Position numbers and translations under genes: made by a program. This document shows positions 21,857 to 63,966 of a stretch of DNA of 64,000 nucleotides, piece after piece; within the stretch, counting starts at the first letter, position 1; every line of letters begins with the position of its first letter. The notes below the pieces were generated by a model, which ran no database searches, was not told where the DNA came from, and worked only from the letters and a program-made list of their open reading frames with translations. Where the stretch lies: sequence record LC819007.1; one strand, 5' to 3'.

Positions 21857-23740
21857 ATGTCATCGAAAAAAGTAGAGATTGCCAAGGAAGACATCGCCGG
21901 CATTGAATGCCGTCACGTCGTGTTTATTCCTCCTTCCAACGACTCACCGGACGACTATCACTTAATCAAAGAAGTAATCCACACCAAAGACGGCAAGCGG
22001 GTGCCGAATGTGCGGATCGTGAAGAACTACCAGCGCCCCTTCTGGATTGCTAAGGAAGGGTTCCGTCGCTACAAGCAGAAGAAGGAATGGGAGGATATCT
22101 CCAAGCTGAAGGAATTCCGTTGCCCCCAGTCTCAACTGGTCGAGCGCGCCTCCAAAGCGTTGGGGATCTTCAAGCCTCCCCGGAGTCTGAAACAACTGTC
22201 CCGCAGTCCTTACCTGTATGGTTCGGACATTCTGTCGACTTCGGTCATCAAGCAGGAAGTCTACCGGGATCGCTGGCCTGAACTGAATACACCGTCCAGT
22301 ATCGCTGCCTCGGATACGGAAACGGACATGATCAAGGGTCATGGTCGCGTGATCATGCAGACCGTGTCGTACAAAAACAAGGTCTACACGGCGGTGGTGC
22401 GGGAGTTCCTGGAACAAGTCGGTGGGGATGACAAGTTTAAGATCGAGAAGTGCAAGGAAGCGCTGATCAAGTATCTGGACGTGGACGAGCCGGTCTTCGA
22501 GAAGGACGGTAAGACTCCGGTGCTCAATAAGGACGGCACGCCGAAGGTCACTAACGTCTTCCGGGATCGCAAGCTGGAATGGGAACTGGAGTTGGTCGAG
22601 AACGACGGCGTAGCGGTCTACCGGGCGTTGCAGAAGACGCACGAGTGGCAGCCTGACTTCCTGACCTTCTGGAACATGGACTTCGACATCGGTAAGATGA
22701 AGGAGTCGCTCGATTTCCACAAGATCCCGTTGGCTGATGCGTGGTCTGATCCGGCTGTAGCACCTCAGTACCGTTTCTACGAGTACAAGCAGGGTTCGAG
22801 TCAGAAGGTCACGGCTTCGGGTAAGGTGACACCGATTGCACCGCACGCTCGCTGGCATACGCTGTACGTGCCGGCTTCGTTCTACGTGATGGATGCGATG
22901 TGTGCGTACAAGCAGGTGCGTACCGGTAAGCAGGAAGAGCGGTCGTATTCGCTTGACTTCATCCTGAACAAGCACCTGAAGCGCGGCAAGCTCAAGTTTG
23001 ATGCAGCAGACGGATTGGCCAAGTCGGACTGGCACGTCTTCATGCAGCGTCACCATCCGATCGAATACATCATCTACAACGTGTTCGATTGTATCGGTAT
23101 TGAACTGCTGGACGAGAAGACCAAGGACTTGTGCGTGTCGGTGCCCTCGGGTGCGGCGATGTCGGATTACTCGAAGTTCAACTCGCAGCCGCGTCGTGTG
23201 GTGGATAAGCTTCACTACTTTGTGCAGGCACGCGGGAAGGTGATCGGGACGACCTCGGACGAGATGGCGGTGGAGTTTGACTCCAGGACGATTAACCTGA
23301 AGAACTGGATCGTGATGCTACCAGCACACTTGGTAGCGGATAACGGTCTACGGATCATCAAGGAGTATCCAGAGATCGCCAGTAACTTGCGACTCCACAT
23401 CGGTGACTTGGACGTCTCGGCGTCTTATCCGAATGGTGAGTCGGTCTTCAACATCTCTCGTGAGACGACGAAGAAAGAGTTGCTTACGATTGAAGGGGTC
23501 TCTGAGTCGGTCCGTCGCATGCAGGGCATCAATCTGTCTGGTGGTGCTACCAACGCGGTCGAGTTCTGTACAGGTATGTTCCACATGCCGCAGATGACAC
23601 AGTGGCTGGAAGCTTACAAGCGTCAGGACGATCTCGTGGCAGTCGCACGGGATATGGCTGAGTGGGTCGACGACAGTGCAGCAGCTGCCGATGCAGTGAT
23701 GGTAGTGGCTGATCTGGAATACGAAGACGAAAACACCTAA
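21857..23740 (+). CDS. Split family-B DNA polymerase, N-terminal subunit (3'-5' exonuclease + palm motif A; phiKZ gp82-like)
   Basis: ExoI ASDTETD, ExoII FWNMDFD, ExoIII YNVFDC and motif A DLDVSASYP; no motifs B/C, consistent with the split polymerase of phiKZ-like phages. Confidence 0.85.
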   Translation: MSSKKVEIAKEDIAGIECRHVVFIPPSNDSPDDYHLIKEVIHTKDGKRVPNVRIVKNYQRPFWIAKEGFRRYKQKKEWEDISKLKEFRCPQSQLVERASKALGIFKPPRSLKQLSRSPYLYGSDILSTSVIKQEVYRDRWPELNTPSSIAASDTETDMIKGHGRVIMQTVSYKNKVYTAVVREFLEQVGGDDKFKIEKCKEALIKYLDVDEPVFEKDGKTPVLNKDGTPKVTNVFRDRKLEWELELVENDGVAVYRALQKTHEWQPDFLTFWNMDFDIGKMKESLDFHKIPLADAWSDPAVAPQYRFYEYKQGSSQKVTASGKVTPIAPHARWHTLYVPASFYVMDAMCAYKQVRTGKQEERSYSLDFILNKHLKRGKLKFDAADGLAKSDWHVFMQRHHPIEYIIYNVFDCIGIELLDEKTKDLCVSVPSGAAMSDYSKFNSQPRRVVDKLHYFVQARGKVIGTTSDEMAVEFDSRTINLKNWIVMLPAHLVADNGLRIIKEYPEIASNLRLHIGDLDVSASYPNGESVFNISRETTKKELLTIEGVSESVRRMQGINLSGGATNAVEFCTGMFHMPQMTQWLEAYKRQDDLVAVARDMAEWVDDSAAAADAVMVVADLEYEDENT

Positions 23741-23744
23741 GCGT

Positions 23745-23782
23745 CATAACGGAGAGAGGGGAAACCCTCTCTCCTATTATGC
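23745..23782. terminator. Bidirectional terminator flanked by CATAA/TTATGC
   Basis: GGAGAGAGGG/CCCTCTCTCC stem between convergent genes. Confidence 0.85.
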
Positions 23783-23784
23783 CG

Positions 23785-24612
23785 TCAATTGACAAACGCG
23801 GTTGTGGGTGGAATAAAATAACTCCCACCTGCGACGCGCGCCAAACCGTTGGTGTACCGGACTTCATCAAAGATCAGGTCCGCGGCCTGACTGGTCAGTG
23901 TCCAGTTGTTACCAAAGTCCAGCTGGGTGTTGTATCCCGGTCCTGCCCATGCCGGATTGGCTACTGAGTAGATCAGCTTGCCATCCACATAAACCTGGAA
24001 CTGTTTGTTCTTCATCTGGATCAGGAAGAGTCTTGACTGAGTCGTGCTCAGCAGATTCCAGAGATTCGCGCCAGTATCCAAAGTCGTGTTATACCAGGTC
24101 GAGCCTGAGCCCGTCAGTCCCTTGAGCGAGAGACCGAGGTTACCGTTGGCTGCGACAAAGACATAGCACGACATCAGGACAGAGGACGTATAGGTGCCTG
24201 AGGGCGGATAGCCGTAGCTCGGAAAACTCGTCGTGAGATCAGGCGAGTACCGGTCACAGAAAATCGGATTGAGCTTGGAGAGCGTTGCGTTCTTCTTGCT
24301 CAAATAGACTTCGACTGTAAAGTCATTCGCGTGGACAAAATCGCCCACTTTATTGGCGTTGACAAAGATTACCGATGTTGATGCAGGCGAGCAATCCACA
24401 CCGGTGGTGCCATACGCTCTGCCTGCCGCAACATACTTGGCCGACGAATAGAGCCCTGCCGAAGGGTGGCCATGCACGTCAGGAGTAACGATCGAGGCAG
24501 AGCCACTACCGGCTGCCTGTCCATCCGTACCATCCAAGTGCAAGAGCACACCACTGGCAGAATTGAAGTCGTAACTCGCAATCTGATTGCCGCCAAGGAG
24601 TGCTTCTAACAT
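23785..24612 (-). CDS. Putative fibre/receptor-binding protein with LamG/ConA-like lectin domain
   Basis: Starts MLEALL; DFTVEVY, QFQVYVDG and LIFDEVRYTNGLAR match the phage LamG-like pattern. Confidence 0.65.
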   Translation of the reverse strand: MLEALLGGNQIASYDFNSASGVLLHLDGTDGQAAGSGSASIVTPDVHGHPSAGLYSSAKYVAAGRAYGTTGVDCSPASTSVIFVNANKVGDFVHANDFTVEVYLSKKNATLSKLNPIFCDRYSPDLTTSFPSYGYPPSGTYTSSVLMSCYVFVAANGNLGLSLKGLTGSGSTWYNTTLDTGANLWNLLSTTQSRLFLIQMKNKQFQVYVDGKLIYSVANPAWAGPGYNTQLDFGNNWTLTSQAADLIFDEVRYTNGLARVAGGSYFIPPTTAFVN

Positions 24613-25479: not shown

Positions 25480-26328
25480 TTAAACGTCAGGTACGTAGTT
25501 CGGATATTGACGACCATCGCCCCAGACAATCCGACAAGCACCGGACAAAGCCGGTATGTTGGCAAAGCCACTACCACCTGCTTCAGAGGCACCACCACCG
25601 AACTCTCCTGAACCTGGATACTGCGAACCCGCTCCGCCGTTCGTGTGGGCTGATGAACCTGCGCCAGCACCATTAGCGCCCTGACCCAAAATACCTACAC
25701 CGCCGCCGCGGCCACCAGAGCCAGCCGTACCGCCGCGCACTACACCGAAACCACCGCCACCGCCACCGCCAACACCATTACCGCCCGCCTGAGTGGCACC
25801 GCCGCCTGCGCCGCCGCTACCTGAGTAACCACCGGCTCCAGAACCACCGCCTGCCTGTTCCCAGAAATAGATGTTCGCACCACCATCCCCACCACCATCA
25901 CCGACACCGCCAGCATTAGTGTTGGTAATGGTGGTGCTTTCTGTTTGTCCGCCGCCCGTGCCGCCATTGGCCTGGAGAAGTACTGTGCTACCACGCAGAA
26001 TCTGAGTGTTACCACCGTTGGCAGCGCGACCAGTCTTAACACTTGCCCCACGAAGGCCCACGACAACTGTCAGGATTTCACCAGGGGTAACCGGAATACT
26101 CGCTTTCCAGCGTAAAGAACCGCCGAAACCCGTCGAACCCCATGTACCGCTAAAGCCAGAGGTATGATCCCAACCACCGCCGCCTGCGCCGACTCCTACT
26201 GCTGAAATAGAGAACACTCCGGCCGGAACCTGGAACTGATAAGTCCCGGGGGTCGTAAAGGCAGCTTGTCCAGCGCCGCTTGTGCTGCCTCCCGATACTT
26301 TGGATGTTACTAATAAAGCTTCTAACAT
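25480..26328 (-). CDS. Glycine-rich putative tail-fibre-like protein (tandem paralog)
   Basis: Starts MLEALL; FTTPGTYQFQVPAG...GVGAGGGGW, ends GACRIVWG; clear paralog of 24623..25462; GAGGA RBS. Confidence 0.65.
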   Translation of the reverse strand: MLEALLVTSKVSGGSTSGAGQAAFTTPGTYQFQVPAGVFSISAVGVGAGGGGWDHTSGFSGTWGSTGFGGSLRWKASIPVTPGEILTVVVGLRGASVKTGRAANGGNTQILRGSTVLLQANGGTGGGQTESTTITNTNAGGVGDGGGDGGANIYFWEQAGGGSGAGGYSGSGGAGGGATQAGGNGVGGGGGGGFGVVRGGTAGSGGRGGGVGILGQGANGAGAGSSAHTNGGAGSQYPGSGEFGGGASEAGGSGFANIPALSGACRIVWGDGRQYPNYVPDV

Positions 26329-26360: not shown

Positions 26361-26408
26361 GTATTTTGACAGCATAAATGGGAAGAGGGGGCTACCCTCT
26401 TCCCGTGA

Positions 26409-26909
26409 TCACCATGCGTACCTGCGACGACGCTTCGTTTCGACGTATTCTTCCATGGCGACTTCCTGTTTAGGCAGGATGTACCAATGGCCTTTTACGC
26501 CTTCGTAGCTCAAAGGCTTACCTTTCTCGAAACCGAGTTTGGTAAAGAGCTTGATCGATTTCTCGTTGCTCTCTTCAATCCAGACAATGCCAGGACTGTG
26601 CGTTGTGAAGAAGTCTCTTAACGCCCACTGCATAATACCCATGCCACGATACGCTGGGTCCAGATACAGTGCGCCTGAACGCCAGTGCCGCACATCCCTC
26701 ACCATCGTAGTGTACGGCATAAAGAAGCCGGCTATGCGCCCGCTAGCCATATCTACGATGACTTGTTTGATACCTGGTCGACGCAGTTCTTCAGAGTCAA
26801 GAAACGGATCTTCTTCCGCATCGGCGATCGTCTGCATCAACTTCTTCTGCATGGACAGAGGGAGTCTTACATTCTTGATCACTTGATACTGCTTAAACTC
26901 GTTACTCAT
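26409..26909 (-). CDS. GNAT-family N-acetyltransferase
   Basis: Motif A LYLDPAYRGMGIM, and NEKSIKLFTKLGF (N...Y/F..LGF); GGAGG RBS. Confidence 0.85.
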   Translation of the reverse strand: MSNEFKQYQVIKNVRLPLSMQKKLMQTIADAEEDPFLDSEELRRPGIKQVIVDMASGRIAGFFMPYTTMVRDVRHWRSGALYLDPAYRGMGIMQWALRDFFTTHSPGIVWIEESNEKSIKLFTKLGFEKGKPLSYEGVKGHWYILPKQEVAMEEYVETKRRRRYAW

Positions 26910-26930
26910 CCCTCCTCTCCCAAATTGGCG

Positions 26931-26965
26931 GCATAAAAGAAAATCGGATGGTTTCCCACCCGATT
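26931..26965 (-). terminator. Terminator hairpin followed by TTTTATGC
   Basis: AATCGG..TGG/CCA..CCGATT stem; about 420 nt downstream of the nearest minus-strand stop. Confidence 0.65.
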
Positions 26966-27378
26966 CCCTGTATTGCTAATGGACAGCCCGCGCCCTACAA
27001 ACCTCCCAATATAAGGCGACCCTACGAATGTAAAACCAGGTGGAGGACATCTTAACGTAGTTGGTCGATTACGCTGCTGCTACTACCCAAGGGGCAGGTT
27101 CCTGCAAGTGGATTGAATGCCTTCGTCCTTTTGCGGGATACTGGCATTCGAACCGTTCAAATTGTCAAAGAATGCAACGCGTCATCCCGACGTGGCTGCT
27201 TCCTAAGTGGATTCTACGGAACGTGATTGGACTTCCTGGAGTGATATTGCTCAGTGGCATGCCCTGTCCGCGTCTCGGTCTCTGTGTCTTTGCCTTTGCT
27301 GTATTCCCGCAGTGGGATTTAGTCAGCCATTACGGAACGTTTGAGACCTTACTTCGTTTCCACATAACATACGTTAAG
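26966..27378 (-). ncRNA. Candidate structured non-coding RNA (~410 nt)
   Basis: No minus-strand ORF of 60 aa or more. Nested inverted repeats 27051-27059/27370-27378 and 27131-27141/27301-27311; TATGTTA near the 5' end; terminator at 26931-26965. Confidence 0.4.
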
Positions 27379-27383
27379 CACTG

Positions 27384-27731
27384 TTAATTTTTACCCTGCC
27401 CTTTCTTCATCTCCGCTAAGAGATCGTTGAGCTCCTGGGTTTCTTGAGGTGCGTGCTTTTCCATCACCTCCAGCATCAAGTCGCACATGTAGGGCGGCTG
27501 ATTCAGGAACTCCGTAAAGGACATGTGAAACGCTGTCCCAACCCGAAGGTCACGAAACGCTTCCATGCGCTCGCGCAAGCGAGAGGCGACGATCGTATCC
27601 TCGCACCAGTGATGTCTCACCAAAGCGAAGTGATCGTCGGGTTGTCCACGATGGTCGTAGATACCATGCGCCTGCTCGTACCGCTCCCGCATCAAGATCT
27701 GTACGTCGGTGCTCACGAACCTTTTGGGCAC
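27384..27731 (-). CDS. C-terminal extension (GT-like) reached by -1 frameshift from 27827..29560, or a small standalone protein
   Basis: Frame is open without stops from the slippery site (27869) through GTG 27731. C-terminal FHMSFTEFLNQPPYMCDLMLEVM resembles tail-chaperone GT / T4 gp51-type tails. Confidence 0.65.
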   Translation of the reverse strand: MPKRFVSTDVQILMRERYEQAHGIYDHRGQPDDHFALVRHHWCEDTIVASRLRERMEAFRDLRVGTAFHMSFTEFLNQPPYMCDLMLEVMEKHAPQETQELNDLLAEMKKGQGKN

Positions 27732-30558: not shown

Positions 30559-31437
30559 ATGCTCGCTATTCTGCAAGACCATCTGAGTCTGTCCGTCTCG
30601 CCGGAGTTATACTCCCTGTACGAGCGGGCCAATGACCTGTTCGACAAGTACGACCTCGAAGACTATCAGCTCGGCTACGAAGACCTGTTGGTCTCGGCTG
30701 ATGGTGCGGGTGACGGGGTGTCGGTCGCCGACAATGACGCGATCTGGCGCCTGACCATGCAGTTCCTGCGTCAGATCACTACCGAGCACCAGATCACACT
30801 CTCGGATGACGCCTCGCTCCTGAACTACATCCAGGTGCTGGAGTTCGTGCGTCAGATCGAAGCCACGGAGCTGACGCAAGAGTGTCTGGATGCACTCTCC
30901 TGTGACGAGTTCGACAACAAGGACGCGTTCGAGCGCTGCATGCTGATTGTTTCCGACATTCCGGAAGAAGAAAGCATGCTCTTCATTGACTCTATCCCCG
31001 ACTGTGTGATCGCAACGATGCGGGAGTATTTCTTCCGTCGCACTGAACTGGAGATCGAGACCGATCGTCTGGACCCGGCCTCCAAAGAGATCTACCGGGA
31101 GATGGACAAGTTCGCTCGTGTGGTGAAAGGTCAGTCAATGCGCTGCTACCAGTATCTCTTCAACGATGAAGGGGCGCTAGGTCTGCCGTTTGAAGCTCAC
31201 TGGCGCGAGAACGAAGAGTACCTGCTGCGTCTGCCGGTTGAAGCTATGGTCTACGAGTGTATCGGCTATGCGCTGATCTCCGAAGGCGGGCTGAACAATC
31301 CGCAGGCGACCATCATGGACTGTGTGGGCAAGGCTGTCTCGGATATCGAACGCACGACTGCCATCCAGTACCAAATTTCCAAAATCCTGATCGACTACCG
31401 GAATGAAGTGGCCTCCGGCATCGGTCTCGTTGTCTAA
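30559..31437 (+). CDS. Conserved phiKZ-like hypothetical protein (acidic, helical)
   Basis: 292 aa; GAGGA RBS; co-transcribed with the vRNAP beta-prime fragment. Confidence 0.7.
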   Translation: MLAILQDHLSLSVSPELYSLYERANDLFDKYDLEDYQLGYEDLLVSADGAGDGVSVADNDAIWRLTMQFLRQITTEHQITLSDDASLLNYIQVLEFVRQIEATELTQECLDALSCDEFDNKDAFERCMLIVSDIPEEESMLFIDSIPDCVIATMREYFFRRTELEIETDRLDPASKEIYREMDKFARVVKGQSMRCYQYLFNDEGALGLPFEAHWRENEEYLLRLPVEAMVYECIGYALISEGGLNNPQATIMDCVGKAVSDIERTTAIQYQISKILIDYRNEVASGIGLVV

Positions 31438-33410: not shown

Positions 33411-33500
33411 AACAACTCCGATAGTGGATAGAAAAGTTTCGAATCCCACCACCCCCACCGGAGCTACTACTTTACAACAGGACTATTACGGCAGCACAAA

Positions 33501-33522
33501 CGCCGGGGGTCCCACCCCGGCG
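33501..33522 (-). terminator. Intrinsic terminator
   Basis: CGCCGGGG/CCCCGGCG 8-bp stem followed by TTTG on the minus strand, just 3' of the tRNA-like element. Confidence 0.6.
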
Positions 33523-33540
33523 CCTGCGGTTAGCTAGGTA

Positions 33541-33604
33541 TGGTCATTGCTCTCTGAGGATGGATTCGAACCATCTTGCTTGGGCTGAGCCCGGACCCAA
33601 TGAC
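33541..33604 (-). ncRNA. tRNA-like element (perfect T-arm, closing stem, encoded 3' CCA); not a canonical tRNA
   Basis: Minus strand GATGG-TTCGAAT-CCATC; GTCATTG/CAATGAC closing stem; ends ...TGACCA; no normal D or anticodon arm. Confidence 0.4.
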
Positions 33605-33795
33605 AGGCCGACTGTGTCGATTGCGCACACACAAGGAATGAATCTACGCAATCCCGCTTTAGGTGTTCACAGTCCTGCAGACTTGGCTTACGCCTCCTCC
33701 ACTTTGTATACCATTTTCACCCCTCGTCCCGCTAACGAGCACGAATGCATGCGACTGCTAGTGCTCCATGGTATTTCTGTTGCTGTAAAAAAGAA

Positions 33796-35529: not shown

Positions 35530-35889
35530 ATGCATCTCTTTCTCCATTTCACTTTCCCGGTCTTGTTCTTCTGCTTGATCGGCGGTCACTTCTTCGGCGA
35601 CTTCGTATTCCAAAACGATTTCGTCGCCAAAGCGAAGAACTTCACCCTCACACCCGATCCGCGTTTCTGGGTGCCGGTGCTGCTCAGTCATTGCTGGGTG
35701 CATGCCATGTTAGTACTGGCGATTACCGGTACATTCTGGGCAGGGCTCTTCATGCTCGTGACCCACTGGTGTATCGACTGGTTCAAATGTGCGGGTTTGC
35801 TCGGCAAAGACGGCTTGGGCTTCGTGCTGGACCAGTTACTACACCTCGTGGTCGTGTTCGTGCTTGCGTGGACATTGGCGCCGCTCTAA
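35530..35889 (+). CDS. DUF3307-like membrane protein
   Basis: LIGGHFFGDFVFQNDFVAKAK, HCWVH, THWCIDWFK and LDQLLH with hydrophobic helices. Confidence 0.75.
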   Translation: MHLFLHFTFPVLFFCLIGGHFFGDFVFQNDFVAKAKNFTLTPDPRFWVPVLLSHCWVHAMLVLAITGTFWAGLFMLVTHWCIDWFKCAGLLGKDGLGFVLDQLLHLVVVFVLAWTLAPL

Positions 35890-62539: not shown

Positions 62540-62621
62540 GATGCTGTTCCTTTACTAATGATGGTTAGATAAACAGGCTCTGCAGAGCTGTCTTGGAGCA
62601 TAGCGCACTGATACTCCAAGA

Positions 62622-62631
62622 TAGTAATATG
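62622..62631 (-). promoter_or_regulatory. Early (virion RNAP) promoter CATATTACTA
   Basis: Third identical copy, about 83 nt upstream of the chimallin ATG. Confidence 0.7.
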
Positions 62632-62886
62632 AGACTCAAAAATCTTTGAATCCAATTCCATCAGGTAGACAGCGTATGCCGAGGTGCCGCGACATCATAG
62701 TCGCGGGCAGAAGAGTGCACTTTGGCGGATTCTCTTCTACATAAAGATATATGGTGGTAAATTTTAACCTTTGTTCTTATTCTCCGTATGAAACACGGGT
62801 GAGCCACCCAATCTTGTAGACAAATTCAGCGGGACTCCCACTCTCAGAGGCCCAGCACCCAGAACTCACTATAGTCAGATCTAGCT

Positions 62887-63966
62887 ATGCAAAGCCTCTT
62901 TCGTCTTGAGCCCGATACCAATACGGGAAGTATTGAATTGCGGCAATGGCGGTACGCCAGTGATGGCTTGCTTCAGAACGTCGACAAAGTCGAGCAGTTC
63001 TACCGCGATTACCCCATCGCCGTTTCTGGCTCCCACCTTCTGGTACGCTTAATCCAGACGGTCAACGTGAGCCGCACACTCCCCTTCGATCGATATATCG
63101 CTAACTGCAGCGCTCGGTCATTGAATGTTGCACAGGCGTTAAAAATCACTTCAGCCCTAGGTAAGGGTCAGATGTGGGATGGCGTCTTCTACGGTGGCGC
63201 GCAGGAGATCATCCTCGCCCACGACACGTATTTCAACCTGCAGGACGCATACACCAACTGGAAAGACCTGCAACCCATCACGGTTTTGCTGCATCCTGAG
63301 TCGAATACGAATCTGCTGATCCCCGACGGTCGCAAGAACTCGCTCGATACGGGTGTGGCGGTCATTGCGGTGAACGTGCCGATGCTGATGGCCCAGTATT
63401 ACTGTTTTAATCAGGAACAGGACCAGAACGAACTGAACGGTAACCCTCGCCGGACTCTGTATCAGTTCATCCACAGCTATCCGCTGACGAATATGATCCG
63501 CACCCAGCTGGATAGCGCGTGTTTCAACCGTCTGTATAACCGTACGACGGGTACACCGAACGTGGATGCGATCCGCAAGCACAGTTTCTTCCTGATTGAC
63601 TACGATCAGGCGCTGGATACGACGGCAGAACAACAACTGGCGTGGCTGCGTCAGCAAAAACGGCGTTTTCCAGGCTTGATGGCGGCGACCAAACTGCCAA
63701 TCTGTGGTGATTTGTGGGAATTCTCGCGTATGCCGACAGTTCCCTACACGCTGCAGGTGTTTTGGGCCCTGACTGTTGCACGGATGAAGGAAGTAGCGTT
63801 CATGTGTTTGGCCATGAAGGACATCGAGACCAGTAACAAGCGGGAACTGGACACCATTCGTTGGTTGATGAAGCTCCATCAGACCAAACAGGTGGTCAAG
63901 AACTCGATGGGTATGGAAGCGTGGTTCAACGTAGCGCCTTACTTCGACATCGTCGGCATTGAGTGA
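62887..63966 (+). CDS. Conserved phiKZ-like core protein divergent from chimallin (probably virion structural)
   Basis: 359-aa ORF; position matches the conserved gene upstream of chmA in phiKZ-like phages. Confidence 0.65.
   Translation: MQSLFRLEPDTNTGSIELRQWRYASDGLLQNVDKVEQFYRDYPIAVSGSHLLVRLIQTVNVSRTLPFDRYIANCSARSLNVAQALKITSALGKGQMWDGVFYGGAQEIILAHDTYFNLQDAYTNWKDLQPITVLLHPESNTNLLIPDGRKNSLDTGVAVIAVNVPMLMAQYYCFNQEQDQNELNGNPRRTLYQFIHSYPLTNMIRTQLDSACFNRLYNRTTGTPNVDAIRKHSFFLIDYDQALDTTAEQQLAWLRQQKRRFPGLMAATKLPICGDLWEFSRMPTVPYTLQVFWALTVARMKEVAFMCLAMKDIETSNKRELDTIRWLMKLHQTKQVVKNSMGMEAWFNVAPYFDIVGIE

Follow-up and report, generated by a model that had tools for sequence, protein, structure and literature searches.

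The final 64 kb of Ralstonia phage FLC4-3B (LC819007.1, 291 kb), matched at 100% identity and hereafter called the window, contain a gap of 474 nt (26910-27383) between two minus-strand genes, gp275 and gp274, and the question is what such a long stretch does in the genome of a jumbo phage whose relative RP12 has been described as phiKZ-related (PMC11530567). A first-pass annotation had taken it for the largest non-coding stretch and proposed a structured RNA; among the gaps annotated in GenBank in the last 50 kb of the window it in fact ranks second, after 62540-63171 (632 nt). The latter would measure about 347 nt if gp310 started at 62887, and another long annotated gap lies at 33411-33795 (385 nt). 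From the comparison of related phages, we estimate a probability of about two in three that the gap corresponds to a conserved multi-hairpin non-coding RNA element of ~430 nt, read from the minus strand.

The locus and its conservation

The gene order around the gap is gp270, gp271-273, gp274, gap, gp275, gp276 and gp277, where gp270 codes for a DNA polymerase, gp271-273 for paralogous proteins, and gp274 (26409-26909, minus) for a GNAT acetyltransferase that represents variable cargo outside the element. On the other side, gp275 (27384-27731, minus) is the last gene of a conserved gp277-276-275 block, from which gp278 and gp279 diverge, the second of these coding for a piece of the RNA polymerase beta-prime subunit. 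We identified gp276 as a homologue of phiKZ gp77, and the layout of gp80/gp79 divergent from gp78-gp77 is common to phiKZ and RSF1. The 115-aa helical product of gp275 has no Pfam family match, its PHROG matches are only to families of unknown function, and its AlphaFold2 model (all-helical, pLDDT 74) gave no fold match in the PDB; no match was found for gp276 among solved structures either. Among gp271-273, gp272 and gp273 are paralogues of one PHROG family (phrog_4474), and a Pfam glycine-rich domain was scored in gp273 only. This gene is annotated from 26061; its reading frame extends upstream without a stop as far as an ATG at 26328, within TATGTTA (window 25480-26328), and the extended product covers the entire Pfam glycine-rich domain PF21722. 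No tRNA or tmRNA genes were found in the whole window (ARAGORN for tRNA).

We compared the element in four independent lineages: FLC4-3B, FLC1-1B, IMG/VR contig 3300049460_000312, and RP12/RP31. A query of viral contigs with gp276 gave one new close relative, and scanning viral contigs, metagenomes and genomes for exact motifs returned only chance 17-20-mers beyond the known relatives. Identity to the FLC4-3B element is 90% in FLC1-1B (vs about 99% genome-wide), 78% in the IMG/VR contig (over 289 nt), and 83% in RP12/RP31 (two blocks). At the 4-fold degenerate sites of gp275-277, by comparison, identity is 0.50-0.67 with the IMG/VR contig and 0.48-0.58 with RP12. The 78-83% identity of the element, against 0.48-0.67 at these sites, therefore places its conservation on a par with that of the surrounding coding sequence, and since it stands well above the 4-fold degenerate sites the gap sequence is not drifting neutrally. 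As judged from these alignments, the element is under purifying selection.

The gene downstream varies among lineages: the FLC phages have a GNAT gene there, the IMG/VR contig has one resembling gp273, and RP12 has one for an SNase-type nuclease, so the element goes with gp277-276-275 and not with its downstream neighbour. Nor does it have the arrangement of a leader, riboswitch or attenuator, as the downstream gene is unlinked and a terminator followed by a TATG motif intervenes. The element is single-copy in each genome, with no paralogues. A covariance model of its 5' domain (R1) found no match in RSF1, phiKZ, three IMG/VR jumbo contigs or RaK2, where blastn gave no match either, and the family appears confined so far to RP12/FLC-type phages. 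The Rfam scan that had been suggested with the first-pass annotation gave no match: none of the 4227 models of release 15 reached its gathering threshold anywhere in the window, and permissive thresholds, applied to the element and two diverged relatives, yielded chance-level matches only (E > 0.1).

FLC4-3B and FLC1-1B are near-identical except in short patches of ~10% divergence (23100-23800, 27100-27700, 30700-31400), which probably reflect mosaic recombination with a third lineage. The patch at 27100-27700 separates the two phages at the element, and in the central patch FLC1-1B is closer to the IMG/VR contig than to FLC4-3B. Distant IMG/VR relatives carry, directly behind their gp275 homologue, a gene for a macro-domain protein of ~150 aa (L010:7713-8180, L011:7791-8276, L012:7877-8341, L013:7697-8140, L014:7713-8168); Pfam PF01661 was confirmed in two of the five proteins, and the other three are clear BLASTP homologues. 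In the Ralstonia clade, it is the non-coding element that occupies this slot.

Hairpins and strand

Five local hairpins and a terminator hairpin reappear in each lineage when these are folded separately. All are read here on the minus strand. The first, HP-A (27273-27350), is a three-tier stem-loop (GGUCUC/GAGACC, GCUG/CAGC, UCCC/GGGA) with 19 core pairs, 5 of them compensatory. It is followed by a variable linker (27204-27272) that is replaced or diverged among lineages and lies inside the FLC4-3B/FLC1-1B recombination patch, and then by HP-B (27165-27207; 13 pairs, 6 compensatory), HP-D (27113-27151; 9 pairs, 5 compensatory), the short HP-E (27081-27099; 6 pairs, 2 compensatory) and HP-F (27015-27069; 15 pairs, 3 compensatory), of which the closing helix is kept. 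HP-D corresponds to the GAATGCC/GGCATTC hairpin already pointed out in the first pass, and comparison bears it out: the stem GAAUGCC/GGCAUUC of the FLC phages has as counterparts AGGUG.GC/GCCACCU (IMG/VR contig) and CGGACG/CGUCCG (RP12), pairing being kept though the stem sequence changes with each lineage. In the MAFFT alignment one lineage is off by one register at HP-D, so that its pairs are undercounted.

The 5' domain, comprising HP-A and a flanking helix, has 95.8% of cells paired over 30 modelled pairs, a level reached by none of 500 shuffles, and slid controls gave 34-53%; its five compensatory pairs all fall within the 19 core pairs of HP-A. Folding beyond shuffled controls, an expectation that came with the proposal of a structured RNA, holds for the consensus and not for the single sequence. 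The column-shuffle test on the full alignment gave a consensus z of -6.7, against +0.9 to -3.4 for seven equal-size coding alignments of the same four phages, in a test where the shuffle does not preserve dinucleotides, the structures derive from the same alignments as the pair counts, and the lineages number four. The single sequence folded no better than its shuffles on either strand, with non-significant z values of -0.86 (minus) and +0.17 (plus). As far as four aligned lineages tell, compensatory changes preserve the five local hairpins and the terminator hairpin in every one of them; the covariation check that had been suggested for syntenic regions of related phages thus finds compensatory pairs in all six.

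The loop block of HP-F (27024-27058, ~35 nt) hardly differs between RP12 and the FLC phages, whereas the IMG/VR contig has another sequence in its place; this replacement within the 3' third in one lineage, together with the poor conservation of the central linker, speaks against a structured RNA. The block contains, on the minus strand, GAUGUCCUCCAC, including CCUCC, a stretch that we take to resemble the 3' end of 16S rRNA (anti-Shine-Dalgarno region). As an anti-Shine-Dalgarno-like seed the loop gave no signal: tried against the 56 initiation regions of the 64-kb window, a set made up of phage genes only, its best duplex reached -20.9 kcal/mol, no better than shuffled loops (-23.3 +/- 2.7).

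The nested long-range pairings on which the structured RNA had originally been based are not supported by comparison. The arms GGATTGAATGCC and GGCATTCGAACC are present in the FLC4-3B gap, and the outer inverted repeat (27051-59 with 27370-78) is indeed a perfect 9 bp in this phage, where by our own estimate ~0.4 such repeats are expected by chance in 474 nt. However, it is not conserved, having an A-C mismatch in FLC1-1B and being absent in the IMG/VR contig and RP12, and its 5' arm lies mostly upstream of the TATG motifs described below, reaching no further than the second base of the first motif. The inner pairing (27132-41 with 27301-11) also exists in FLC4-3B and is likewise not conserved; it competes with two conserved local hairpins and is weakened by a 4-nt deletion in FLC1-1B. 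A further proposed hairpin, GCAGG-TT-CCTGC, is not conserved and is impossible with its 2-nt loop. The direct repeats noticed in the gap are present, AAGTGGATT and TACGGAACGT each occurring twice, but only FLC4-3B has the second copy of TACGGAACGT.

Concerning the strand, HP-A and HP-B together contain 12 G-U cells vs 2 A-C cells when read on the minus strand, and a plus-strand reading would turn the 12 G-U cells into mismatches, which indicates the minus strand. For the 5' domain, the consensus energy is -23.7 kcal/mol on the minus strand vs -16.4 on the plus strand, and the shuffle z is -4.7 vs -2.6. The column-shuffle z of the full alignment is also strong antisense (-5.9), and the strand call therefore rests on the G-U counts, the 5' domain, the terminator, which would work as a signal only on the minus strand, and the orientation of the flanking genes, both minus. 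Purifying selection, compensatory changes and G-U strand bias across the four lineages thus back the structured minus-strand RNA put forward by the first-pass annotation.

Boundaries and competing explanations

The order of features is common to the four lineages: gp275 stop, spacer, a 20-mer with two TATG motifs, structured body, terminator, and a further TATG. The 20-mer (27352-27371, minus) is invariant and unique per genome, contains the two TATG in overlapping register (27368-71 and 27363-66), and is a candidate phiKZ-type start. The late promoters of phiKZ, recognised by the non-virion RNA polymerase, read T(-3)ATG(+1) with G as +1 (PMC7598289), a sequence that the doublet at 27363-71 matches as a putative promoter of this type. 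The minus-strand start with TATGTTA reported earlier is found at 27365-71. The density of TATG in FLC4-3B is 5.5 times higher in intergenic than in coding sequence, and inside the gap the motif occurs, in all four lineages, only at the 5' end and directly past the terminator.

At the 3' end, the element was also said to have its own terminator, and this stands: a predicted intrinsic terminator (26931-26971, minus), missed by a simple terminator scanner, consists of a 14-bp hairpin (26938-26969) and the U-tract UUUUCUUUU, with 8 of its 14 pairs compensatory. Both its position and the hairpin and U-tract arrangement are conserved in all lineages. The following TATG (26932-26935, minus) overlaps the end of the U-tract and is a candidate start for the gp274 mRNA. 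Measured between the TATG doublet and the last base of the U-tract, the element is ~430 nt long in FLC4-3B, ~445 nt in the IMG/VR contig, and ~310 or 470 nt in RP12, the last being given as two values because HP-E is there a terminator-like hairpin followed by TATG. In this RP12 counterpart (L003:4079-4116), UUUUAUGC comes after a long GC-rich hairpin; as predicted, this arrangement would split the RP12 element into two transcription units of ~310 nt and ~160 nt.

Similar modules, in which a GC-rich terminator hairpin and a U-tract running into TATG(C) lie just upstream of the next gene, recur ahead of many genes, in the window at 26370-26404 and 26931-26971, and upstream of the genes starting at 35530 (+), 36851 (+), 42627 (-), 57672 (-) and 58066 (-). 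The density of TTATGC is 13 times higher in intergenic than in coding sequence. Its sequence suggests that the module is a terminator and a start site in one.

These boundaries bear on whether the element would be a discrete transcript of its own, to which we give slightly less than an even chance. It may instead be no more than the 3' UTR, long and structured, of the gp277-276-275 mRNA, acting in cis, for example as a 3' stabiliser or processing platform, with neither a promoter nor a role in trans. The gp275 stop (27384) and the element are 12 nt apart with no terminator in between, so that read-through of the gp277-275 operon, which has a promoter-like region upstream of gp277, must also cover the element; moreover, the element always sits behind gp275 whatever the next gene. 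We nonetheless regard an exclusive 3' UTR as the less likely reading, as the 20-mer with the TATG doublet is invariant while the spacer that precedes it (12-13 nt) varies freely among lineages, a length of ~430 nt with six conserved hairpins far exceeds the needs of a 3' end, and the internal terminator-plus-TATG module of RP12 splits the element in a way that suggests separate RNA units.

Much less probable still is a role for the gap as DNA, be it a replication origin (an alternative already raised in the first pass), a packaging site, or a recombination anchor at the edge of a cargo island. The gap does lie exactly at the border between the core block and variable genes, and is reached by the recombination patch at 27100-27700. 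However, it is single-copy, has no iterons and no AT-rich unwinding stretch (GC 0.50), its terminator stems covary, and its helices tolerate G-U and not A-C, a signal that is specific to RNA and to one strand. Least probable of all is a decaying gene remnant or unannotated small protein(s): the macro-domain gene found in this slot in distant relatives is about as long as the gap, and two ORFs are open in FLC4-3B, one of 108 codons on the plus strand (27061-27387) and one of 24 codons on the minus strand, but no ORF is common to the lineages, which differ by 1-2 nt indels, substitutions have no 3-base periodicity, and tblastn with the macro-domain proteins gave no signal, leading us to reject a macro-domain pseudogene. 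On this comparative evidence, the gap is non-coding.

A candidate structured RNA and its context

We therefore return to the structured RNA. That the element functions as such appears likely from its pattern of conservation. What it would do is a more tentative matter: it may be the first member of a new family, that of large (~430 nt) structured RNAs that are transcribed independently and act in trans in jumbo phages of the RP12/FLC type. The phage's own RNA polymerase would make such an RNA, which would serve as the RNA component of a ribonucleoprotein, for instance as a scaffold or decoy in the course of infection. The relatives of phiKZ use their own RNA polymerases, and the DNA of phiKZ is shielded in a pseudo-nucleus (PMC7598289). 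In the scheme that we propose, the phage non-virion RNA polymerase would start at the G of one of the two TATG motifs, as at phiKZ late promoters, and read-through from gp275 may add to the element RNA. Transcription would halt at the terminator, releasing a stable RNA that would act via its fold, more likely as a protein-binding scaffold or decoy than by antisense pairing.

Several known phage RNAs offer partial parallels. GOLLD and ROOL are large, structured RNAs that phages and prophages often carry, and are represented as families in Rfam. The element would similarly be a large multi-helix phage RNA; however, it is smaller, single-copy and not beside tRNA genes, and the Rfam models gave not even a weak score. 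The pRNA of phi29, ~120-174 nt long and found in small phi29-like phages, is a structured part of a protein machine, a kind of role that the first pass had also suggested; unlike it, the element has no Rfam match and no link to packaging genes. Closer in taxonomic terms are the sRNAs of phiKZ-like phages, sRNA005 of 201phi2-1 and the phiKZ sRNA upstream of gp182, which are shorter than 250 nt, derive from 5' UTRs by early termination, and lie upstream of a tail gene (PMC11512511). Like these, the element is non-coding, belongs to a phiKZ-related jumbo phage, and conserves both a position adjacent to core genes and a predicted fold. It differs from them in its length of ~430 nt and its location downstream of the block containing the gp77 homologue, and has no sequence in common with them.

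To our knowledge, little has been mapped of the RNA biology of phiKZ relatives, for which the sRNAs described are all short and 5'-UTR-derived; an RNA of 430 nt with a conserved structure would be a tractable new object of study. The core block that the element adjoins lies next to the homologue of phiKZ gp80, which codes for a subunit of the virion RNA polymerase, and FLC4-3B is a culturable biocontrol phage. Should the element be only a 3' UTR, it would still be unusually long and conserved for a phage. The layout in which a terminator overlaps a TATG, for its part, may provide a practical rule for annotating transcription units in the RP12/FLC clade.
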